From positions 248,001-312,000 of IMG/VR virus record IMGVR_UViG_3300044712_001937: a stretch of 64,000 nucleotides of DNA. One strand, given 5' to 3'. Under the pieces are notes generated by a model. That model saw only the letters and a list, made by a program, of their open reading frames with translations. It was not told where the DNA came from and ran no database searches. Shown here in pieces: positions 17,775 through 43,562 of this stretch. Made by a program: the position numbers and the translations under genes. Every line of letters starts with the position of its first letter. Within the stretch, counting starts at the first letter, position 1.

Positions 17775-18326
17775 TTAATCATCAAATTCGAAGTCTATAT
17801 CTATAGCTTCTAATTGTTTTTCGCTATATTCAGACCTTATTTTTTTACGAACTTCCATTAATGCTTTACCCAATAAATTCATGCCCTGCCATTTTCTTTC
17901 ATCAAGAACATCATCATTACTCCAAATCAAACCAATACCCCATATTTTATCAACTGGAGAAGCCTCAACTAATGTTTTTGCTTTGGTATGTAATAATGAA
18001 GTTTTTAAACGTAAATTTTGAGTAAATTTAGCATAATTAACATCAACCATAACTTGAAATGATATTATCATCCATTGTTCTGGATTGAAATTTTTAACTT
18101 TTCTTCCTAATGCTTTATTTTCTTTTGGATTTGGAGTTTTAATTATTAATTCAGCAGTTTCCATATCACCAAAGTATATCGCTTTTTCCCACATAAATGC
18201 TTGTTCAGTATTGAAAAAAGTAATTCCTTTATATTTGAATTTACATTCGAACCAATTTGAATATATACCACTCCAAAAATATATGTGACTTTTTGTTATT
18301 CGTTCACCTTCAGTATAGTTTTTCAT
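17775..18326 (-). CDS. NADAR family protein
   Basis: YSNWF, TEQAFMWEKA, KALGRKV, AKFTQN, LVEASPVDKIWGIG, GMNLLGKALMEVR. Confidence 0.92.
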   Translation of the reverse strand: MKNYTEGERITKSHIYFWSGIYSNWFECKFKYKGITFFNTEQAFMWEKAIYFGDMETAELIIKTPNPKENKALGRKVKNFNPEQWMIISFQVMVDVNYAKFTQNLRLKTSLLHTKAKTLVEASPVDKIWGIGLIWSNDDVLDERKWQGMNLLGKALMEVRKKIRSEYSEKQLEAIDIDFEFDD

Positions 18327-32552: not shown

Positions 32553-33092
32553 TCACGCTACTTTCATTTTAACGTTAAAATGATTATTTTTCAAATCAAT
32601 TAAACAATCTTCAAACGTAGGTAATATTTTACCTCCAAATAATTCAATACTTTCTTGTAGCATTAAATTAACACAATTGTTTCCAAAATTTTCGATATTT
32701 GGAAATTCAGATTTTTGTTTTAGATAGTTATAATTAAAATATGTTTCAGTAATGTCTTTCAATTTTTCATTATGAAACTGAGTATAACCATATATTATTT
32801 TTTTCAAACTAAACCCAACACCCATTTCAAATGCAGAACCATCATCAACACAAGCACCACGAAATGGATTTAAATTTACAATAATTATGTTACATTTTTG
32901 AATTAAATCAACATTTGATAAAAATATACTTTTTGAATGTGCTTTCGAGAATAATTCACCATCAAAATTTTCATTATCAAATGGTGATAAACCTGTAAAT
33001 CCATATTTTTCACATAATGCTTTAATTCTTTCAAAATAGTCTAACGCATCAGCACGAAAAACGTCAGCACCTGCTAAATAAATGTTGTTCAT
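32553..33092 (-). CDS. Nucleoside 2-deoxyribosyltransferase family protein
   Basis: IYLAGADVF, NLNPFRG, DDGSAFEMG, NLML. Confidence 0.88.
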   Translation of the reverse strand: MNNIYLAGADVFRADALDYFERIKALCEKYGFTGLSPFDNENFDGELFSKAHSKSIFLSNVDLIQKCNIIIVNLNPFRGACVDDGSAFEMGVGFSLKKIIYGYTQFHNEKLKDITETYFNYNYLKQKSEFPNIENFGNNCVNLMLQESIELFGGKILPTFEDCLIDLKNNHFNVKMKVA

Positions 33093-33308: not shown

Positions 33309-34229
33309 TTATATTAATGTTGAAGAATTATTATTATATTTTCTTTTTGAATCAAGACATTTTATAATAAATCCATTTAATGATTTTCCATTTTTTGGAT
33401 TGTGATTAATTATTTTTCCAGAATTAATTTGTTTAAATTCTTTATAGAAAGAATAACCACGATTTTTAAGAAATTTAGATATATTCATTGTCCTAAATTC
33501 ATTTCCATCGACATCAATAATAATATATCTTAAAGCTCTATGATATTCTAATTCACCCGATTTTATTCTTTCATCGTCTATATTCACTCTAAATTTATTA
33601 CCATCCCAATCTCTAACAACAAGAGTTCCTTTTCTTTGTTTTGATAAATTTTGTTTTGTCTCATTACTCAATTTAATGCCAACATTAGGATATCTATATT
33701 TAGATTTATTTTGATGATATTTATTTTTACTTATTCTTACAAGAGTATTAGTTTCTATATCAATAACACTAACAAAACCACAAGTATGCCCAGATAATTT
33801 TGGATTATTATCAAACTCATCTTTACTAATTCTTATTTTCATTCCCATTTCATTAATTGCAATCACTTCATTTTTTCTATTAAACATAGGATTATTATTT
33901 CCTTTAACATTTCTACCAAAACACCCTCCAATACTTGCATAAGATTCATTAAAATATAATTCAGATTCAACAACATTATTTTCTTTTTGAATACGCAATT
34001 CTTCAATTAATGCATCATTTCTATTATTATGATATGATAATATTTTTAATGAAAATAAATATTTATTATTTTTTAATTCAGATTCAAATATTTTTCTATA
34101 TCTTTTACTTCTAATAGTACCAAAATATTTTCCAGATAATGCTTTTATTTCCGATGTAGAACCAATATAATATTTAGGTAAATTATCACCTAAATATGTT
34201 GTTAAATATACCACAAATTTATTATTCAT
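33309..34229 (-). mobile_element. Free-standing GIY-YIG homing endonuclease gene next to DNA ligase
   Basis: VVYLT...YYIGS, ALIEE catalytic Glu, YFN; repeated C-terminal DNA-binding-like units; class B promoter 34245-34252. Confidence 0.78.
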
Positions 34230-34280: not shown

Positions 34281-35699
34281 TTAAATAAATTGTGAACTTT
34301 TATTTATTTCAATACATTCAATCAATGTATTTGCAATATCTTTTTCACCAATACGAAGACCTTTATATACTGGATGAAGTAGTGAATAATTTTTATCTGA
34401 ATCTTGTGACAATCCAGAACATTTAACAGCAACCACAGTTCCTAATAATTCATTTTGTCTTTCAGTTATATCGAGCATAACATCTTCTGACATTCCAGTA
34501 GGACTTGTTTGCAATAAGCCACATTCAGTTTCGCAATTTAATGATGATATTACATTAGAATTTTTTCCTGTACCATAATTAAACCCAACTATTTTTAAAT
34601 CCAATTCAATTTCCTTTTTTAGTTTAACTTGAGTTACAGGCTTACCATCAGACCATTTTCCATTATATGATTTCAAAATTGTACCTTCACCATTTTTACT
34701 TAAAATATCTTCAAAATGTTCAATAACATCATTCATGGTTGATACTTCTCTTGTTTCAACCAATGAAATCATTGAGAAATTATTATTATTAATTAAAATT
34801 TTAAGATTATTAAATCTAACATAATAAGGGGATTCAGATTTATTATCATAATATTCATCGTTTGTTATTACATCCCATACTGTTAATCTTATTAAATTCA
34901 ATGCCGATTGAAATTCCATATGCTTTTTCTCAAATTCATCGATTTTCTTTTGTGTTTCTTCCGATGTTCTACTTTCTCTTTTTTTATTAATATCAATTAA
35001 TGAAGCTATTATTCCATTAGAAACATATCTTTCCATGATTCCACCATCAGGAGAATCCATCGTCAGTTCACCATTTAACACACAATCGCCTAATTTTTCT
35101 AATTCAAATAGAAATTTTGCACCATCTAAAACTGTTGGCTCACCTTGTCTTGAAGATAATTCAACATCACCAGAATCAATAATGACATTAACATACCTTC
35201 CATCCATTTTTTCCTGCGAAAAATTTATTGGGGTAGATTTTAATATATTTTTAACTAATTTATCTGAATATGATTTAGCTCCAAGATATGCAACTTTTTC
35301 AATTAGGTCAGGAAATACTTTGTTAATATTTCGAGTTCCCATGCCTATTTTACAATCTTTTTCAATTATACGTTCAATAATATATGAAGAATCTTCGTCA
35401 AGACTTTCTAACACACCTTTTAAATGTTGAATAGCTGCATTACCAGTAACACTTCTATTACTTAATAAAGTTAATTGATTTATCGCCCACCATAAAGAAT
35501 CATTGTAAGATTCCGGAATATGTTCTTTATGTTTATCATATTCAGGAATTTGTTTAATATAAAACTTAATTCGTTTTGAATTTGCTAAATATAATATTTT
35601 TTCTAATAAATCATTATTAATATATTTAGAAAGAATATTCATTTTCTCATTAGTACTTGATTCATTACTAATTTCATCGAAAATTTGTTTAATTGTCAT
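34281..35699 (-). CDS. ATP-dependent DNA ligase (T4 gp30-like)
   Basis: QEKMDGRY, LNGEL, VWD, EGTILK, KLK, LLHP. Confidence 0.92.
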   Translation of the reverse strand: MTIKQIFDEISNESSTNEKMNILSKYINNDLLEKILYLANSKRIKFYIKQIPEYDKHKEHIPESYNDSLWWAINQLTLLSNRSVTGNAAIQHLKGVLESLDEDSSYIIERIIEKDCKIGMGTRNINKVFPDLIEKVAYLGAKSYSDKLVKNILKSTPINFSQEKMDGRYVNVIIDSGDVELSSRQGEPTVLDGAKFLFELEKLGDCVLNGELTMDSPDGGIMERYVSNGIIASLIDINKKRESRTSEETQKKIDEFEKKHMEFQSALNLIRLTVWDVITNDEYYDNKSESPYYVRFNNLKILINNNNFSMISLVETREVSTMNDVIEHFEDILSKNGEGTILKSYNGKWSDGKPVTQVKLKKEIELDLKIVGFNYGTGKNSNVISSLNCETECGLLQTSPTGMSEDVMLDITERQNELLGTVVAVKCSGLSQDSDKNYSLLHPVYKGLRIGEKDIANTLIECIEINKSSQFI

Positions 35700-36184: not shown

Positions 36185-36925
36185 TTATTTGATATTATTT
36201 TTAAAATTATAAAACCATTTATTGAACATACTTGGTAATATATTATGTTCAGAAAATCCATATAATCCACAAGAATAAAAATTATGACATTCAATTATAA
36301 ATGTATCTTTATCATTTACTCCAACATCAAGAGTATATGCAATTGGTGCAGATTTATATGATTTAATCATTTCTTTAATCACCTCAACATTAGGAAATAA
36401 AGTAAATTCACCACTATAACAATTTAAACCAACTAATTTTCCATCATATATAAATGCACGCCATTCACTATCTATAGATATAAATGTGGAAAATTGATAA
36501 TCACCTATTGGTGGTAATTTACTTGAAGAGACAAAATCTGCAAATTTTTTAATCTCATCATTACTTTTAGCAAACCATTTACCACTTAAATCTTCAACAT
36601 CCATGTGATTGCCATTTTTTACAACACGTTTTGTAAAATAATAACTCATTAATTCTTCCGGAATATTAATTGGATTAGGTGAATAACCATAAAATTGTTC
36701 CATAAAAGCATGAACAAATTCTACAGAACCTATTGGAGTATAATCTCTATGACAATTCTTAAAAAAGAATTTTTTTTGTTCAGAGGTTGTATCAAAAAAT
36801 TTGACGATAATTTTATCTAAAGTATTTCTTTCTCTTAACCAATTAATAAACCTAATTGATTCAAGAAGTGTAAATGAAAAATCGTGCCTAATATCACCAT
36901 CAATCTTTTGTATAAGAAATCTCAT
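36185..36925 (-). CDS. ATP-grasp domain protein (DUF4343/R2K-like)
   Basis: GSVEFV, SEWRAFI, YTLDVG, IIECHNFYSCGLYG. Confidence 0.8.
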   Translation of the reverse strand: MRFLIQKIDGDIRHDFSFTLLESIRFINWLRERNTLDKIIVKFFDTTSEQKKFFFKNCHRDYTPIGSVEFVHAFMEQFYGYSPNPINIPEELMSYYFTKRVVKNGNHMDVEDLSGKWFAKSNDEIKKFADFVSSSKLPPIGDYQFSTFISIDSEWRAFIYDGKLVGLNCYSGEFTLFPNVEVIKEMIKSYKSAPIAYTLDVGVNDKDTFIIECHNFYSCGLYGFSEHNILPSMFNKWFYNFKNNIK

Positions 36926-37272
36926 AATTCATCTTCCTTTCCTTCAAAATTTTTATCTAACCAAAATATTTGAGCTGCTTCAGTTGGGTCACCATCATGA
37001 TATTTTTTTACATAATCTCTACGAGAATCAACGAAATTAGCATAACTATACCACCAACCTTCAGGTTTAAATTTTTTCCAAGCTTCTTCAGCTTCTTTTT
37101 CACCTTTAAATATAAAGGTTTCTTCACACATTATAATAGAAATTCCTATTGGTTTAAAGCCAGCTTCTCTAACTTCTTTCAATAAAATACTACTTGGTGT
37201 ACCATATCGCCATACGCCATTTTCATCGTAGAAATTGTCAAGGTTATCAAAATATTCTTCAGTCTTTTCCAT
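36922..37272 (-). CDS. Hypothetical protein
   Basis: 116-aa ORF. Confidence 0.65.
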   Translation of the reverse strand: MEKTEEYFDNLDNFYDENGVWRYGTPSSILLKEVREAGFKPIGISIIMCEETFIFKGEKEAEEAWKKFKPEGWWYSYANFVDSRRDYVKKYHDGDPTEAAQIFWLDKNFEGKEDEL

Positions 37273-37333: not shown

Positions 37334-38494
37334 TCATTCTAAAATTCCTTTATCGCTAAATGTTTTATATAATTTTAATGATGTTGCATACATTAAATTA
37401 GGAATTTCATCTGCAATAATATCAATCAGTTGATTATTTACTGTAACTGGAAAATGTGGGGGAACTTGGTCTAAACAAGTAACAACAATATTTTTATTTG
37501 AATACATATTATGATGACAATCGCAACAAAATGCATATTTTAATAATTCAATATCCAATACCGATTTTCTAAAATCACCTTGAAATCCACCATTAACATT
37601 AGTTTCTAATGGATTATTAATTATATATGAATTATCTAATTCTTCGTTTGTCATAAAACCATTACCATGCCGAGTTTGATATGCACGTGTAATATAATAA
37701 GTTTGAATATTAAAAATATCTTTTAGTATAGAATTTTTAATAATTTCTAAAGCATTTTTAGATGTCGTATTACTCCGGGTTACATTCGGAAAAAAACCAT
37801 AATTTTGGTCTAATAATATTCCTTGTCCACCTTCAAAAATATAATTATCATACTTTTTCGATGAAATTAAAATATCTAAATTTTCAACAATAATATAATT
37901 TTTAACCAAATTATCACAAGCAATAATAAAATCATCAACAGCTTTTTTTAATTTAAAATTTAAATTTACTTCAATATTATCATAATTATAGTTATAATAA
38001 TTATCTTGAATCAATTTTAATTTAGCGTCACGAATTTTAGGAAATAATAAATCTCGAACATATAAATGAAAATAATCTTCATTTCTTTGAATAGTAGTAC
38101 CAAAACCTACGCCAACACTTCCGTGATTATTTACTTTTTCAAGTTTATGATTTTTAAAAATATCAAAAGGTGTTGTAACCATAGCATTTGAGTTATAAAT
38201 ATTAACTGGATTAACTCCAATATTATTTAAAACTAAACTTTCTTTATACACTCCAATTGGATTTACAGTACAATATTCTGACCAATAAGTATGTGCACCT
38301 TGAAATGAACCAGAACCAAAATTTGAAAATATATGTCGATGTTCGTCACTAAACACAACGGTATGTCCTACTTGATGTCCACCATTAAATCTAATTATTA
38401 ATGATTTTGGTGATTGTTTAGCTAAATAACTAACTGTAGCTCCTTTACCTTCATCTCCGAATTGTAATCCTAGAATTATAGATACTTTATCCAT
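37334..38494 (-). CDS. Divergent adenylosuccinate-synthetase-fold enzyme
   Basis: GLQFGDEGKG, RFNGGHQVGHT, FEGGQGILLD, TRAYQTRHGNG; lacks the canonical TTGRxRR aspartate loop. Confidence 0.85.
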   Translation of the reverse strand: MDKVSIILGLQFGDEGKGATVSYLAKQSPKSLIIRFNGGHQVGHTVVFSDEHRHIFSNFGSGSFQGAHTYWSEYCTVNPIGVYKESLVLNNIGVNPVNIYNSNAMVTTPFDIFKNHKLEKVNNHGSVGVGFGTTIQRNEDYFHLYVRDLLFPKIRDAKLKLIQDNYYNYNYDNIEVNLNFKLKKAVDDFIIACDNLVKNYIIVENLDILISSKKYDNYIFEGGQGILLDQNYGFFPNVTRSNTTSKNALEIIKNSILKDIFNIQTYYITRAYQTRHGNGFMTNEELDNSYIINNPLETNVNGGFQGDFRKSVLDIELLKYAFCCDCHHNMYSNKNIVVTCLDQVPPHFPVTVNNQLIDIIADEIPNLMYATSLKLYKTFSDKGILE

Positions 38495-38551
38495 ATAAAA
38501 TAATTTTTGATTAATTTACGATAATTACGATAAAACAATACATTATGTTAC

Positions 38552-38585
38552 AAAAAAAGGGATGTATTTTCATACACCCCTTTTA
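38552..38585 (-). terminator. Intrinsic terminator between vWA and PurA-fold genes
   Basis: AAAAGGG.TGTAT/ATACA.CCCTTTT imperfect stem; abuts class A promoter 38526-38553. Confidence 0.55.
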
Positions 38586-38614
38586 CACATAGTTAGTAGT
38601 CGTATTAGTAGTAG

Positions 38615-39538
38615 TTATAAGTTAAGAACACCTTCGTCATTAGTTGCAACAATACCACCAGTTGTAGTTACTAAAGCAAGAGCGTTTGTAACCATACCAG
38701 CAGTCTTAGAATCAAATTTACTAACTACAGTTTTGATATCAACACCATGTTGAACTGCAATTAATGTTGCAATAGTTGCACAAATAGCATGATAATCATC
38801 AAGAATAATTAATCTTTCGCCAAGCATTTTTCTCCAATACCCCAAAACATTACTATCATTACAGTACGAACCTTCGTTAACATGTATATGATATACGTTA
38901 TAAAGTCTTTGTGCTTCTGCAAGAAGTTGTTCATCAGACGCATCCTCTGATTGAGGATAACCCATAATATTTTTTAGAGATTCAGCATCTAAACAATCCC
39001 AAGATTTTTCATCACCAATTGTAAATAAAAAACCTTTTTGATTACGTTTTTCAAAGCAATCAATAGAAGTATGTCTACCTGCAATAAGCCAAGCAAGAAG
39101 ATAACTTTCCATATCCTGTCCACCACCACCTTTTTGGATTGCAACTCCTGTTAACCACTTATCAAGTTCTTCAGTACCTGATTCAAATTGTCCAACTTGA
39201 AGCGGAGTACTAATACAATGATGGTCATTAATTGCACCGAAAAGTACTTGTGGGTCTGGAACACCATTATCAATAATAGTATTCATAAGAGTAGGAAGTT
39301 CATTTTTAACTAAGTCTTCAGGTATACGACCCATACTTCCAGTATCATCAAGAAATATCATTACAGCTAAAGAATTTGGATGAATATCACTATCACGAGA
39401 TTCCCTAATTGTAAGATTTTTAGGACTCATTTCAACAGTAGCTGTTTTAGAAAAAATAGCATCTGCACTTTTAGTAGCATAACTTTTAGACGAACTTAAG
39501 TTCGTGTATGCATCATCTGACCAACGGCTATATCCCAT
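38615..39538 (-). CDS. vWA domain protein
   Basis: IFLDDTGSMG MIDAS, QVGQFES, GGGGQDMESY, FTIGDE. Confidence 0.85.
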   Translation of the reverse strand: MGYSRWSDDAYTNLSSSKSYATKSADAIFSKTATVEMSPKNLTIRESRDSDIHPNSLAVMIFLDDTGSMGRIPEDLVKNELPTLMNTIIDNGVPDPQVLFGAINDHHCISTPLQVGQFESGTEELDKWLTGVAIQKGGGGQDMESYLLAWLIAGRHTSIDCFEKRNQKGFLFTIGDEKSWDCLDAESLKNIMGYPQSEDASDEQLLAEAQRLYNVYHIHVNEGSYCNDSNVLGYWRKMLGERLIILDDYHAICATIATLIAVQHGVDIKTVVSKFDSKTAGMVTNALALVTTTGGIVATNDEGVLNL

Positions 39539-39540
39539 GT

Positions 39541-39696
39541 TTATTCAGATTTAGCGTTTTCAGTTTCAGGAGCAGGTTCTTGAGTTGGTTCAGAAGGAAT
39601 TGAAGTATCTGAACAATCATCAGTTTTTTCAACTGTTGCTTCTTTTTCATTTTCCAACTCTTCAAAAGACATTGGTGAATGTACGTTATTACCCAT
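39541..39696 (-). CDS. 51-aa acidic low-complexity peptide (not in ORF track)
   Basis: Hand translation MGNNVHSPMSFEELENEKEATVEKTDDCSDTSIPSEPTQEPAPETENAKSE; stop 2 nt before the vWA ATG; TATATTTG upstream. Confidence 0.65.
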   Translation of the reverse strand: MGNNVHSPMSFEELENEKEATVEKTDDCSDTSIPSEPTQEPAPETENAKSE

Positions 39697-39757
39697 AATT
39701 TTAAGATTTAAATGTTAATTAATAATTAAAATAGAATACAAATATATAAAAAATAAA

Positions 39758-40663
39758 TTAAATATCAAGAGGATAAAACTTTTTTTCGAAATTTTTACTA
39801 ATAATTTCTCGATATTGTTTATACTCATCAATATCGTTTTGATGTTTAGTTAATAAAAAATTCAAAACATTAGCATTAATATCTTTATTCATTTTAAGTT
39901 TTGTTCCGGCAGCACTTTTATCACCTAATAAATATATGGTAATCTTTTTGCATAATTCTAAATCTACATCCGGTGTTGCAAATTTTTCTGAAAATAATGT
40001 TGTAGGATACCACATTTTATATTTAGCAGATATTGTAGTTGCTTTTTTAAACACTTCAGTCATATGATAAAAAGATATTACAATAATACCATGTGTTTCT
40101 GGAACTACAAAAACTGTTGTTGGATTTAAACCAAGATGTACATAATTAATTTGTCGTAACCATAATGTAAATTCAAACATTCTTGAAAATATCCAATTAG
40201 TATGAATTTGTGGAAGTTTTTGATTTGATAGAGGTATTGACCTATCTTTCAATAAAATAACAAGTTTTTCACTTTTATCTATTTTTGAAGTTTCCCAACG
40301 CATACTTTCAGGTAAGTAACGATGAAATCCAAGAGATGCTTTATCTTTTTTATCTTTAAGAATTTTAAAATTATTAAATGATTTTCTTAATAAAGCACGG
40401 TTAGCATCAGTAACAATATATTCTATTTTTTTATCAAATATTTTAAAATTACCTGTTTCATCAGTAAACGTAGTTCCACCTTCAAGAATTAACTTATATT
40501 CTGTAAGCTTTGCCATTGCATCATTAGCATTAGGCAATTTACATATGTCGGGGTGAATTAGTTTGCAATATTGAATATAATCCTTTTTCCAATCATCAGT
40601 AGGAAAAATGTCAATAGGTTTATTTGCACTTAAAACCTTTGAAATTAACTCGGTAGCTGTCAT
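39758..40663 (-). CDS. J-domain-like (HPD) plus protein-kinase-like (probable pseudokinase) fusion
   Basis: KLIHPDIC; YVHLGLNPTTVFV and IVISFY at catalytic-loop and DFG-equivalent positions. Confidence 0.65.
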   Translation of the reverse strand: MTATELISKVLSANKPIDIFPTDDWKKDYIQYCKLIHPDICKLPNANDAMAKLTEYKLILEGGTTFTDETGNFKIFDKKIEYIVTDANRALLRKSFNNFKILKDKKDKASLGFHRYLPESMRWETSKIDKSEKLVILLKDRSIPLSNQKLPQIHTNWIFSRMFEFTLWLRQINYVHLGLNPTTVFVVPETHGIIVISFYHMTEVFKKATTISAKYKMWYPTTLFSEKFATPDVDLELCKKITIYLLGDKSAAGTKLKMNKDINANVLNFLLTKHQNDIDEYKQYREIISKNFEKKFYPLDI

Positions 40664-42146: not shown

Positions 42147-42689
42147 ATGGGACTTGATTTGATTAAAATCAGAGAATACGCACAAAAATGTCATAATGAT
42201 GCTAACTGCACATATGATGAACAAAATTATTTTGTTCATGTTGATATGGTTGTTGATGAAGTTGATGCTAATTTCGGAATTTTTAAAAATATTGAAGATT
42301 ATGAAATTACAAAAGCTGCTGCTAATCTGCACGATTGTATCGAAGATGCTAAACAATCCTTTAATGATATAAAAAAGATATCAAATAAAGAAGTAGCTCA
42401 TGTTGTATTAGCTGTTACTGATTATCCCGATGAAAATAGATTATTACGTCATTTATTAACAATGCATAAAACTGTTAGAGATTATCGTGCAATAATTCTT
42501 AAATTATGTGATATTTATGCTAATGGTTCATATAGCAAAAAACGTGGTAGTTCCATGTATAAAAAATATAAAAGAGAATATGAATATCGTAAACCTATAT
42601 TCAAAATAGCTTTTGAATGGTATGATGAAAAAATAAATCAAAAAGAATTAGATATTTTCTGGGATAAACTTGATAAATTATTTGAATAA
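42147..42689 (+). CDS. HD-domain hydrolase (RelA/SpoT-HD, small alarmone hydrolase-like)
   Basis: YAQKCH, YFVH, AANLHDCIED, LKLCDIYAN. Confidence 0.8.
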   Translation: MGLDLIKIREYAQKCHNDANCTYDEQNYFVHVDMVVDEVDANFGIFKNIEDYEITKAAANLHDCIEDAKQSFNDIKKISNKEVAHVVLAVTDYPDENRLLRHLLTMHKTVRDYRAIILKLCDIYANGSYSKKRGSSMYKKYKREYEYRKPIFKIAFEWYDEKINQKELDIFWDKLDKLFE

Positions 42690-43010: not shown

Positions 43011-43562
43011 ATGAAAAATTTAGGACATGTAATGATTGACCTTGAAACTATGGGTAACTGTAGTTTGTCATCAATACTTTCTATCGGTGCTGTTGAATTT
43101 GATATTAATACAGGTGAAACTGGAAAAGAATTTTATAAAAGAATTCATTTACAATCATGTCTTGACTTAGGATTAAAAGTTCAAGCAGAAACTATATATT
43201 GGTGGTTACAACAAAATGAAAATGCAAGACTTGAAGTTTGCAAAGGTGGTGATGTATTACCAAAGGTATTAATGGATTTAAACAACTATTTCTCAGAACT
43301 TGGAGATTTTCAACTCTGGGGTAATGGTGCAAGATTTGATATTGGGATTCTTGAAGATGCTTATGTAGCTTGTCAAATTAAATCTATATGGAATTTTAGA
43401 AATGAAAGAGATGTGCGAACATTAGTTTCATTTCTGCCTAAAATTAAAGAACATTATCCATTTGAAGGTATTCAACACAATCCAATTCACGATTGTAAAC
43501 ATCAAATTGCATATTGTTCAGATATTTGGCAAAATTTGAATATTAATACAGATAAATTATAA
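43011..43562 (+). CDS. DEDD 3'-5' exonuclease (DUF5051/Rv2179c-like)
   Basis: VMIDLET, WGNGARFD, RDVRT, HNPIHDC. Confidence 0.88.
   Translation: MKNLGHVMIDLETMGNCSLSSILSIGAVEFDINTGETGKEFYKRIHLQSCLDLGLKVQAETIYWWLQQNENARLEVCKGGDVLPKVLMDLNNYFSELGDFQLWGNGARFDIGILEDAYVACQIKSIWNFRNERDVRTLVSFLPKIKEHYPFEGIQHNPIHDCKHQIAYCSDIWQNLNINTDKL

Follow-up and report, generated by a model that had tools for sequence, protein, structure and literature searches.

A conserved cassette of vWA and PurA-like genes shared by phages and bacteria

The locus considered here lies in a 64,000-nucleotide stretch (the window; positions 248,001 to 312,000 of IMG/VR record IMGVR_UViG_3300044712_001937) of a jumbo phage genome, and it raises the question of why a relative of the purine enzyme PurA should be encoded next to a J-domain/kinase-fold fusion and a vWA protein, and whether these genes form a functional unit. 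The initial annotation described four co-oriented genes between positions 37334 and 40663, and this observation is confirmed, except for one regulatory element. The genes and the elements around them are the following:

40478..40663 (-), J domain (residues 1-62) of a 301-aa J-pseudokinase (whole ORF 40663..39758)
39758..40477 (-), protein-kinase-fold domain (residues ~63-301) of the same protein, lacking the canonical catalytic residues
39541..39696 (-), 51-aa acidic, Glu/Thr/Pro-rich micropeptide beginning Met-Gly
38615..39538 (-), vWA protein of 307 aa with MIDAS-type residues
38552..38580 (-), intrinsic-terminator-like hairpin between the vWA and PurA-like genes
37334..38494 (-), PurA-superfamily enzyme of 386 aa
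36185..37272 (-), downstream context only: a 116-aa protein of unknown function (37272..36922) and an R2K-clade ATP-grasp protein (36925..36185; Pfam R2K_2 at 6e-20)

The genes of the cassette and their products

The 301-aa protein was modelled by AF2 with a pLDDT of 85.5. Helices 25-36 and 46-62 flank the H37-P38-D39 motif, forming a helix II-HPD-helix III hairpin, and residues 1-66 match J-domain clusters in structural comparison at TM 0.8-0.85. HPD is invariant in 76 of 76 family members, although the Pfam DnaJ model remains below threshold here and is weak (E 0.016) in gp251 of mycobacteriophage Cali. Foldseek searches against PDB and AFDB match residues ~63-300 to protein kinases at probability 1.0, and PHROG 3043 ('kinase') matches at E 9e-5. 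The catalytic loop of the family is HxG(L/I)NP(E/T)(S/T), with Gly at the position of the HRD Asp in 73 of 76 sequences; in this protein it reads H176-L-G-L-N-P-T-T, and DFG is replaced by I-S-F-Y-H. H176, H191 and H200 are invariant or nearly so, and the domain, although termed a pseudokinase, could be catalytic in an unconventional way.

The micropeptide is conserved in frame in 17 distinct positional homologues, all starting Met-Gly, with an N-terminal motif MGxxxxSxxxSFEEMAxEQE followed by a variable acidic/Thr-rich tail. It is a real but clade-specific accessory gene, confined to close jumbo-phage relatives; it is absent from the bacterial copies, in which the kinase-like and vWA genes are mostly 3-30 nt apart, and from most of the more distant viral copies.

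The vWA protein has an AF2 pLDDT of 93.7, and Foldseek relates it to integrin beta-I, NorD and RGLG vWA domains and to an AFDB 'VWFA' entry at TM 0.93. No Pfam model matches it, whereas phrog_2971 does so at E 5e-43. The MIDAS-type residues D64-x-T66-x-S68 and D176 are invariant or nearly so. It also harbors a family-specific N-terminal extension with the RESRDS motif and a flexible C-terminal tail ending G-V-L-N-L. The protein starts Met-Gly in about 95% of copies (135/150 diverse cluster representatives and 144/147 locus copies) across phages and bacteria of Actinobacteria, Proteobacteria and Bacteroidota, while the residues that follow vary.

The hairpin between the last two genes, a 9-bp G/C-containing stem with a GAAA loop followed by U7, folds at -19.6 kcal/mol (z -5.4), with none of 200 shuffled sequences being as stable, although a simple terminator scan did not detect it. 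Strict co-transcription of the PurA-like gene with the other three is therefore not required in this phage. The promoter that was also proposed at this point is not supported, as sigma-70-like matches are at chance level (44 found against 45 expected).

A PurA-superfamily enzyme without the aspartate site

The enzyme matches Pfam PF00709 at E 1e-37, but it scores 112 bits with the NCBIfam PurA equivalogs, against a cut-off of 402, and 34 bits with the PurZ model, against a cut-off of 300 and over the N-terminus only. In PurA (adenylosuccinate synthetase, EC 6.3.4.4) of Escherichia coli, R131, R303 and R304 are the aspartate-binding arginines, and D13 and H41 are the catalytic base and acid. 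Alignment to this protein showed that the window protein keeps the P-loop G13-DEGKG, H44 (E. coli H41), Q224, T239 and the TCLD guanine motif, whereas about 60 aa of the canonical C-terminus are missing. In 139 sequences of the family, D13, K16, H41, Q224, D229 and T239 (E. coli numbering) are invariant or nearly so, and the guanine-specificity Asp of TKLD is kept. By contrast, R131 becomes V/L/K/M, R303 is variable, R304 becomes F/L/Q, the inter-subunit R143 becomes P/H/F/Y, T300 becomes aromatic and T301 becomes Gln (99%). New conserved residues are R240 (78%) and H273 (100%), corresponding to R240 and H276 in the window protein, which also carries the family-specific F304-Q305-G306.

Distribution and genomic context

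Co-occurrence of these genes in other genomes, whose absence had been set beforehand as grounds for rejecting a functional link, is far beyond chance. Among isolated phages, the vWA-like gene occurs in 219 records and the PurA-like gene in essentially the same set, which comprises about 200 cluster C mycobacteriophages, 10 Rhizobium phages, 6 Vibrio phages and 1 faecal phage, and the two genes are adjacent. In 160 loci retrieved with the vWA alignment alone (80 viral, 80 bacterial), the PurA-like gene is the next gene in 155. The upstream gene is the J-pseudokinase in 85 loci and an unrelated ~115-aa helical protein in 54; the J-pseudokinase is one of at least three interchangeable first genes, and both operon types occur in viral contigs and in bacterial genomes. 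Homing endonucleases are inserted between the vWA and PurA-like genes in some phages without breaking the pairing. Nor is the module phage-specific, since at least 578 of the 600 matched stretches listed from species-representative bacterial and archaeal genomes encode a relative. The ATP-grasp gene and, less often, the 116-aa gene follow the PurA-like gene only in close relatives of this jumbo phage (within loci L006-L047 of the 160). No published description of the cassette was found.

In 25 of the 160 loci, from several lineages, genes of NAD+ and ADP-ribose metabolism lie within 6 kb. In Mucilaginibacter, seven same-strand genes separated by 3-53 nt encode NrtR, a Prs-like protein, NAMPT, an ADP-ribosylglycohydrolase, the kinase-like protein, the vWA protein and the PurA-like enzyme. 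In Chryseobacterium/Flavobacterium, the cassette is found in islands with NrtR, NADAR, PARG, Macro, SIR2, ARH, Tpt1, NAMPT and a Prs-like gene. A viral contig carries NMNAT-Nudix and NAMPT two genes upstream, and in one further locus an isochorismatase-TCAD9-phosphatase protein is encoded directly downstream. NADAR or NMNAT/PRTase genes also lie close by in Vibrio phage pv27 and Rhizobium phage Y65. The phage studied here encodes NADAR and NAMPT elsewhere in its genome, not adjacent to the cassette. This association is, however, seen in only about 16% of the sampled loci, and most cassettes sit in unrelated, variable neighbourhoods.

What the cassette may do

The initial annotation interpreted the genes as a chaperone-recruiting sensor/effector system, such as a protein or nucleotide modification switch, and this interpretation is only partly supported. 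The domain assignments and the existence of a conserved module hold, and a role in protein or nucleotide modification fits an enzyme that keeps the catalytic residues but has lost the aspartate site. However, there is no direct evidence for a sensor/effector switch, the core is the vWA and PurA-like pair rather than all four genes, and the micropeptide does not belong to the conserved module, its suggested role as MIDAS ligand or nucleic-acid mimic being hypothetical. The recurrent NAD+/ADP-ribose context and the nearly invariant N-terminal glycine of the vWA protein had been overlooked.

What the analysis itself establishes is that the obligate core consists of a MIDAS-type vWA protein and a PurA-superfamily enzyme encoded immediately downstream, that a third, exchangeable gene precedes them, and that the enzyme is neither canonical PurA nor PurZ. 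The mechanism and the role are inferred, in the absence of biochemical or genetic data for any member, and are put forward tentatively. In this view, the cassette is self-contained and horizontally mobile, and the enzyme, keeping everything PurA needs to bind GTP and to phosphorylate O6 of a 6-oxopurine nucleoside monophosphate, would activate IMP or GMP with GTP and transfer the purine C6 to an amine other than L-aspartate, producing an N6-substituted adenylate-type product. Loss of R143 and changes in the 120-131 loop could nevertheless mean that the first substrate also differs. The vWA protein would be its dedicated partner, either presenting the acceptor at its MIDAS site or being itself the acceptor through its N-terminal glycine. 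A structure-based prediction of the complex gives no support for a contact between both proteins, as the score stayed the same when the PurA-like chain was replaced. The pseudokinase domain would be a scaffold that holds the vWA protein, with its J domain recruiting host DnaK (Hsp70), and the micropeptide may be an additional Met-Gly-initiated substrate or competitor. J domains with HPD that recruit Hsp70 are likewise fused to, or work with, other modules in phage proteins such as Rki of phage RB43 and in the eukaryotic kinase and J-domain proteins GAK/auxilin, with a different domain order and partner; stimulation of DnaK by this J domain is inferred by analogy.

The boldest version of this proposal is an N-terminal purinylation, in which, after removal of Met1, the α-amine of Gly2 of the vWA protein (and, in this phage clade, perhaps of the micropeptide) replaces L-aspartate as the nucleophile, so that a purine nucleotide becomes covalently linked through C6-N to the protein N-terminus, and the modified vWA protein, handled by the J-pseudokinase and DnaK, would be the active species. 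It would fit the vWA gene being the only gene always found with the enzyme, the Met-Gly starts of both putative substrates, the loss of exactly the side-chain carboxylate-binding arginines that a peptide N-terminus would not need and the gain of an invariant aromatic-Gln-Gly motif. There is also a direct precedent in type IV CBASS, where the QueC-like enzyme Cap9 conjugates a nucleobase to Gly2 of its partner CdnD, which has a conserved Met-Gly start, the protein amine replacing ammonia in a nucleobase biosynthetic reaction (Wassarman et al., bioRxiv 2025, doi 10.1101/2025.04.06.647259); the enzyme superfamily (QueC against PurA), the partner (a CD-NTase against a vWA protein) and the base are nevertheless unrelated, and here conjugation is only hypothesised. 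This reading is purely inferential and remains doubtful, as the complex prediction gave no specific signal, the first ten residues of the vWA model average pLDDT 90 and may be packed rather than free, and a conserved Gly2 could have a structural role or carry another modification. Somewhat less likely still is a small-molecule aminase or ligase of NAD+/ADP-ribose salvage, which would re-aminate a hypoxanthine-containing nucleotide (IMP, or a deaminated NAD/ADP-ribose species) with ammonia or another small amine, or make an N6-modified adenylate signal or inhibitor, the vWA and J-pseudokinase proteins only regulating or assembling it. The repeated embedding in NrtR/NAMPT/Prs-like/ADP-ribose hydrolase clusters in independent lineages, the proximity of NMNAT/NAMPT genes in phages and the replacement of the aspartate-binding arginines by hydrophobic residues and Gln speak for it, and loss of R143 could accommodate a bulkier 5' substituent; but most loci lack NAD genes nearby, no candidate deaminase partner is conserved, and it does not explain why a MIDAS vWA protein with a conserved Gly2 is obligatory.

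The remaining alternatives are judged very unlikely. Analogy with the NTPase-vWA pairs (MoxR-vWA, NorQ/NorD, BchI/BchD) would make the PurA-like protein a mere GTPase motor and the vWA protein an adaptor for assembling or metallating a client with help from DnaK. vWA proteins typically work with a dedicated NTPase, NorD is among the structural matches and the J domain implies chaperone involvement, but the residues specific for purine-nucleotide chemistry (D13, H41, Q224, T239), and not just the P-loop, are conserved, the partner is a PurA-type ligase rather than an AAA+ protein, and neither a MoxR partner nor a conserved client gene is seen in the 160 loci. The vWA and kinase-fold adjacency also recalls the TerY-P triad (vWA, kinase and PP2C phosphatase), although the kinase-fold protein here lacks catalytic residues and carries a J domain, and no PP2C phosphatase is conserved with it. 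An ordinary auxiliary metabolic gene, boosting AMP synthesis from IMP and aspartate via adenylosuccinate beside unrelated neighbours, would agree with the Pfam match, the intact catalytic core and the database label 'adenylosuccinate synthetase', but it is opposed by the family-wide loss of R131, R303, R304 and R143, the low equivalog score, the pairing with the vWA gene in 155 of 160 loci and the chromosomal copies in bacteria, which presumably also carry a housekeeping purA. The least likely identity is PurZ (N6-succino-2-amino-2'-deoxyadenylate synthase of Z-genome phages), the first enzyme of 2-aminoadenine (Z-base) DNA synthesis and another phage-borne PurA relative with changed substrate specificity, with which current labels lump this family (phrog_1211 and RefSeq phage records read '2-aminooxy adenylosuccinate synthetase'). 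The family scores low with the PurZ model, PurZ uses aspartate and retains the aspartate site, which this family lacks, the neighbours in the 160 loci are vWA and kinase-like genes rather than DatZ/MazZ/DpoZ-type genes, and the family occurs within NAD-related clusters on bacterial chromosomes.

From its genomic context, it is inferred that the cassette is tied to the NAD+/ADP-ribose economy of the cell, although its proteins belong to none of the families of the NAD+ salvage/reconstitution and ADP-ribose processing islands (NrtR regulon, NAMPT/NMNAT, NARP-type pathways, NADAR/Macro/PARG/ARH). In the phage, it could serve nucleotide/NAD+ homeostasis or counter-defence during infection.

Genomic setting and predicted products of the cassette

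The analysed bases, 248001-312000, belong to a 364.7-kb metagenomic jumbo-phage genome with direct terminal repeats, and have about 25% G+C. The DNA ligase encoded in this region is closest (49%) to those of Cellulophaga phages, and the nearest bacterial copies of the genes studied here are found in Bacteroidota, so that a Bacteroidota host is likely. A nucleotide similarity search revealed no relative of the region among isolated phages. The cassette and the genes that accompany it are the following (window coordinates, unless the whole genome record is indicated):

40663..39758 (-), 301 aa, predicted J-domain/pseudokinase fusion
39696..39541 (-), 51 aa, acidic micropeptide
39538..38615 (-), 307 aa, predicted vWA protein
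38494..37334 (-), 386 aa, PurA-superfamily (PurA-like) protein
36185-37272 (-), R2K-clade ATP-grasp protein (a predicted peptide/amino-acid ligase) and a 116-aa protein of unknown function, directly following the PurA-like gene
34281-35699, ATP-dependent DNA ligase, further downstream
33309-34229 (-), homing endonuclease similar to the GIY-YIG/NUMOD genes inserted in the cassettes of related phages
42147-42689 (+), 43011-43562 (+) and 32553-33092 (-), other nucleotide/RNA-related genes: a SpoT/RelA-type HD-domain protein (HD_4, borderline score), an Rv2179c-like 3'-5' exoribonuclease and a nucleoside 2-deoxyribosyltransferase
17835-18269 (-), NADAR domain protein (156 bits)
129709-130464 (+) of the whole genome record, NAMPT-family phosphoribosyltransferase

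The observation made in the initial annotation holds, as its four co-oriented minus-strand ORFs lie exactly at the coordinates it gave and each of its domain calls was checked. Coding strand and GC skew switch at about 41.5-42 kb. In this jumbo-phage clade the ATP-grasp gene regularly follows the PurA-like gene, and the 116-aa gene and a shorter ligase-domain gene do so in some relatives.

The 301-aa protein is modelled confidently by AF2 (pLDDT 85.5). Its residues ~63-300 match bilobal protein kinases in Foldseek searches (probability 1.0, TM ~0.5-0.6), whereas residues 1-66 match J-domain clusters (TM 0.8-0.85), with modelled helices flanking, in a helix II-HPD-helix III hairpin, a His-Pro-Asp motif that is invariant in 76 of 76 distinct family members. 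In the same 76 sequences the HRD Asp is replaced by Gly in 73, the catalytic-loop Asn by Ser, Thr or Gln in 72, and DFG by S-F-Y-H, with Asp in 1 of 76. By canonical criteria this is a pseudokinase fused to a genuine-looking J domain. However, H176 and H191 are invariant and H200 is conserved in 73 of 76, together with an invariant P188 and near-invariant Y219 and D234, and this histidine triad leaves room for a metal or ligand site, or for unconventional catalysis, rather than a dead scaffold. The homologue gp251 of mycobacteriophage Cali has the same J plus kinase-fold architecture, with a catalytic loop HGAITPDN, and passes the Pfam Pkinase cut-off (33.8 against 31.7 bits).

The 307-aa protein has no Pfam hit at E<=1 and no NCBIfam hit at E<=0.1, but it is modelled at pLDDT 93.7 as a Rossmann-like vWA domain, with Foldseek hits to integrin beta-I, NorD and RGLG vWA domains at probability 1.0 and to an AFDB VWFA entry at TM 0.93. 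The residues of a putative MIDAS are D64-x-T66-x-S68, with Thr in place of the first Ser, and D176; D64, S68 and D176 are invariant and T66 is conserved in at least 90% of 68 diverse sequences. The AFDB entry A0A2A4U119, a 526-aa cellular protein, carries this vWA subtype at its N-terminus (TM 0.73, 27% identity) fused to a U-box (E3-ligase-like) domain, which hints that the subtype works in protein-modification contexts. The 386-aa protein is a member of the PurA superfamily (PF00709, E 1e-37). Between the vWA and PurA-like genes there is a hairpin (-19.6 kcal/mol, z -5.4) followed by seven U, which was missed by a simple terminator scanner but confirmed by direct folding. The promoter that the initial annotation also placed here remains unverified, as a sigma-70 scan, which is uninformative for a likely Bacteroidota phage, gave hits at chance level.

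Conservation of the vWA and PurA-like gene pair

A tblastn search of 50,697 phage records found the vWA-like gene in 219 and the PurA-like gene in essentially the same genomes, namely about 200 cluster C mycobacteriophages (Bxz1, Cali, Catera), 10 Rhizobium phages, 6 Vibrio phages and one faecal phage, in which the two genes are always adjacent. The vWA family is large, with more than 7600 hits among 90%-identity clusters and 1562 clusters at 50% identity, and in species-representative bacterial and archaeal genomes at least 578 matched stretches encode a relative. Using only a vWA alignment as bait, 80 viral loci and 80 loci from bacterial genome assemblies were collected, the latter including Hymenobacter, Dyadobacter, Niastella, Chryseobacterium, Flavobacterium, Saprospiraceae, Candidatus Electronema, Methylococcales and CPR lineages, and all their ORFs were subjected to HMM searches and clustering. 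A PurA-like gene lies downstream of vWA on the same strand in 155 of the 160 loci. It is usually the very next gene, although small ORFs or a homing endonuclease intervene in some phages, and most of the exceptions end at a contig edge. GIY-YIG/NUMOD homing endonuclease genes are inserted between the two genes in several related phages (sampled loci L006, L015, L019, L027, L030-L034, L077 and L078) without dissolving the pair.

The gene that precedes vWA is the J-pseudokinase in 85 loci and an unrelated, well-conserved helical protein of ~115 aa, termed c3 (consensus ...SLKRNNxQIRxDRA...YLFG), in 54, whereas a third, Met-rich protein takes this place in the Vibrio and Rhizobium phages. Both operon types occur in viral contigs and in bacterial genomes. 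Therefore, the obligate core is vWA plus PurA-like, and the first gene is exchangeable. Clustering across the 160 loci showed no further gene cluster conserved with the cassette, which for the phosphatase gene of the TerY-P triad (vWA, Ser/Thr kinase and PP2C phosphatase) rests on ORF clustering rather than on a PP2C model search of every locus, and no conserved AAA+ neighbour is present such as the MoxR ATPase of MoxR-vWA chaperone pairs. A search with the PADLOC 2.0 models of anti-phage defence systems gave no hits for the three window proteins, and a single weak hit of the c3 representative (JAB, E 0.0034) is taken as chance.

The micropeptide exists in 17 distinct forms, all of which begin Met-Gly, share the motif xSFEEMAxEQE and continue with a variable acidic/Thr-rich tail. 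These homologues were recovered by position, since a phmmer search with this low-complexity peptide found almost nothing. They occur only in close jumbo-phage relatives of the window, plus one more distant viral copy, and in bacterial copies the kinase-like and vWA genes are mostly 3-30 nt apart. The micropeptide, which the initial annotation included in the module, is thus a real gene but not part of the conserved module.

Residues of the PurA-like protein and of the vWA N-terminus

The PurA-like protein scores far below the curated thresholds of both enzymes whose names it could carry. Its best score with the NCBIfam PurA equivalogs is 111.9 bits against a cut-off of 402 (NF002223), TIGR00184 gives 94.7 against 395, and the PurZ model NF038379 gives 33.8 against 300, covering residues 4-59 only. 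Alignment of 139 distinct family members with E. coli PurA, taken from NC_000913, showed that G12-D13-E14-G15-K16-G17 of the P-loop, H41, Q224, L228, D229 and T239 are invariant or nearly so, that N38 is a conservative Gln, and that the TKLD guanine motif is T-C-L-D, with the Asp kept. The MAFFT alignment of the C-terminal third was unreliable, so that TKLD was placed by eye, and R305 is probably retained as window R309, depending on gap placement. In the window protein, D14 and H44 correspond to E. coli D13 and H41, and R240, H276 and F304-Q305-G306 to E. coli positions 240, 273 and 300-302.

Residues of E. coli PurA that are changed in the family (E. coli position, then residue in the family)
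R131: V/L/K/M
R303: variable
R304: F/L/Q
T300: Y/W/F
T301: Q (99%)
R143: P/H/F/Y
S240: R (78%)
V273: H (100%)

In the E. coli enzyme, studied by the Fromm and Honzatko laboratories, D13 and H41 are the catalytic base and acid for O6 phosphorylation of IMP, R131, R303 and R304 bind L-aspartate in a site that also comprises T300 and T301, and R143 reaches across the dimer to the IMP 5'-phosphate. The family therefore keeps, as inferred from sequence, the chemistry and probably the GTP donor, but not the aspartate site, which argues against an ordinary PurA and also against PurZ, which still uses aspartate.

A feature that the initial annotation missed is the N-terminus of the vWA protein, which starts Met-Gly in 135 of 150 representatives of 50%-identity clusters and in 144 of 147 distinct locus copies, including those of the Vibrio and Rhizobium phages. 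The next few residues are small or variable, of the form G-(Y/G)-(S/G)-x-(W/Y)-S. In Mycobacterium phage Cali (locus L001, 3965-5020) the annotated start of gp252 (VPNSKHTAKENV-MGSGAW...) is probably 12 codons too far upstream, as the family-conserved Met-Gly lies inside it. Many family members also end in a G-hydrophobic-hydrophobic-x-Leu/Phe motif after a variable, low-confidence linker, which suggests terminal docking or modification motifs. A conserved Gly2 is the hallmark of the partner protein in type IV CBASS, in which a QueC-like enzyme conjugates a 7-deazaguanine to the Gly2 amine in place of ammonia. By analogy, and by inference only, the vWA N-terminal amine is an attractive candidate for the nucleophile that replaced aspartate.

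Genomic context and inferred function

In Chryseobacterium and Flavobacterium (loci L147-L165) the c3-vWA-PurA-like trio sits inside an island that contains NrtR (Nudix plus winged helix), NADAR, a 2OG-Fe(II) oxygenase, DUF4291, PARG, Macro domains, SIR2, ADP-ribosylglycohydrolase (ARH), Tpt1/KptA, a metallophosphatase, NAMPT and a PRPP-synthetase-like (Prs-like) gene. In Mucilaginibacter (L100), seven same-strand genes with 3-53 nt between them read NrtR, Prs-like, NAMPT, ARH, J-pseudokinase, vWA and PurA-like. The Prs-like and NAMPT-like pair of these NrtR islands resembles the two-enzyme NARP1 pathway that rebuilds NAD+ from ADP-ribose, so the islands may be ADP-ribose recycling units rather than classical salvage. 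A viral contig has NMNAT-Nudix and NAMPT two genes upstream, another bacterial locus has an isochorismatase-TCAD9-phosphatase protein directly downstream, and Vibrio pv27 and Rhizobium Y65 have NADAR or PRTase/NMNAT genes within a few kb. The present phage encodes NADAR and NAMPT away from the cassette, while no Macro domain was found. Overall, 25 of the 160 loci have such genes within 6 kb, a count without a background rate. The association recurs in independent lineages but holds for a minority of loci, and is treated as a lead to the physiological role and not as proof. A single three-chain structure prediction (PurA-like, J-pseudokinase and vWA as partner) gave a score of 0.39, which fell to 0.00 when vWA was replaced and was 0.44 when the PurA-like chain was replaced; it is not evidence for or against binding, and at most hints that any signal comes from the vWA/J-pseudokinase pair.

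What the analysis establishes is a conserved, mobile cassette with a vWA plus PurA-like core, an enzyme that is neither PurA nor PurZ by defining residues and curated thresholds, and a J-domain pseudokinase as one of several first genes. It remains an inference that the enzyme is a GTP-dependent ligase transferring an activated 6-oxopurine nucleotide to a non-aspartate amine, that vWA acts as adaptor or acceptor, that DnaK is recruited, and that the role is connected to NAD+/ADP-ribose metabolism or conflict. The interpretation in the initial annotation, a chaperone-recruiting sensor/effector system such as a protein or nucleotide modification switch, is in this sense supported in part, without direct evidence for a sensor/effector switch.

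Among the alternative explanations, a plain PurA serving as an auxiliary metabolic gene is rejected on the loss of the aspartate site and the obligate pairing. PurZ, the enzyme of Z-genome phages, is rejected on the model score, the aspartate site and the neighbourhood, as the neighbours in the 160 loci, examined by ORF clustering rather than with models of the Z-cluster partners DatZ, MazZ and DpoZ, are vWA plus the J-pseudokinase or c3, and half of the loci are on bacterial genome contigs, some of them inside NrtR/NAD-related gene clusters. An NTPase-vWA chaperone pair and a small-molecule aminase in NAD salvage are further rivals, next to N-terminal purinylation of a protein. In this last view, which is possible but unlikely on present evidence, the cassette would be a protein-nucleotide conjugation system, in which a PurA-derived ligase uses GTP to activate IMP or GMP and joins purine C6 to the alpha-amine of the nearly invariant N-terminal glycine of its vWA partner, and in this phage clade perhaps also of a Met-Gly micropeptide. 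The resulting 'purinylated' protein would be assembled or targeted by the J-domain pseudokinase and host DnaK. This would be a second, independently evolved case of nucleotide-biosynthesis machinery repurposed for protein N-terminal modification, used on both sides of phage-host conflicts linked to NAD+/ADP-ribose.

The PurA fold and superfamily are already known, and what is new is a branch of it in a new operon architecture, whereas a conjugation system would be categorically new. Literature searches on adenylosuccinate synthetase or PurA-like proteins in connection with vWA domains, kinases, jumbo phages, NADAR, ADP-ribose or defence, and on NrtR with vWA, found no description of this module, and two Aravind-lab reviews mention only other vWA systems, although prior mention in de Souza & Aravind 2012, on NAD-utilising pathways, cannot be excluded. 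Every part is currently annotated as 'hypothetical', 'kinase', 'PurA-like' or, wrongly, PurZ. RefSeq labels Cali gp254 and its relatives '2-aminooxy adenylosuccinate synthetase' (PurZ), which is not supported by the present evidence, and members of phrog_1211 that are paired with a vWA gene should not be called PurZ. The vWA family is present in about 200 sequenced cluster C mycobacteriophages, which are genetically tractable. If the enzyme really uses a non-aspartate amine, it defines a new reaction class within the PurA superfamily, as PurZ did for Z-DNA, and if the acceptor is the N-terminal glycine of its partner, it is a new post-translational modification. The recurrent NAD+/ADP-ribose context connects the cassette to the active field of NAD+-depleting immunity and phage counter-measures.
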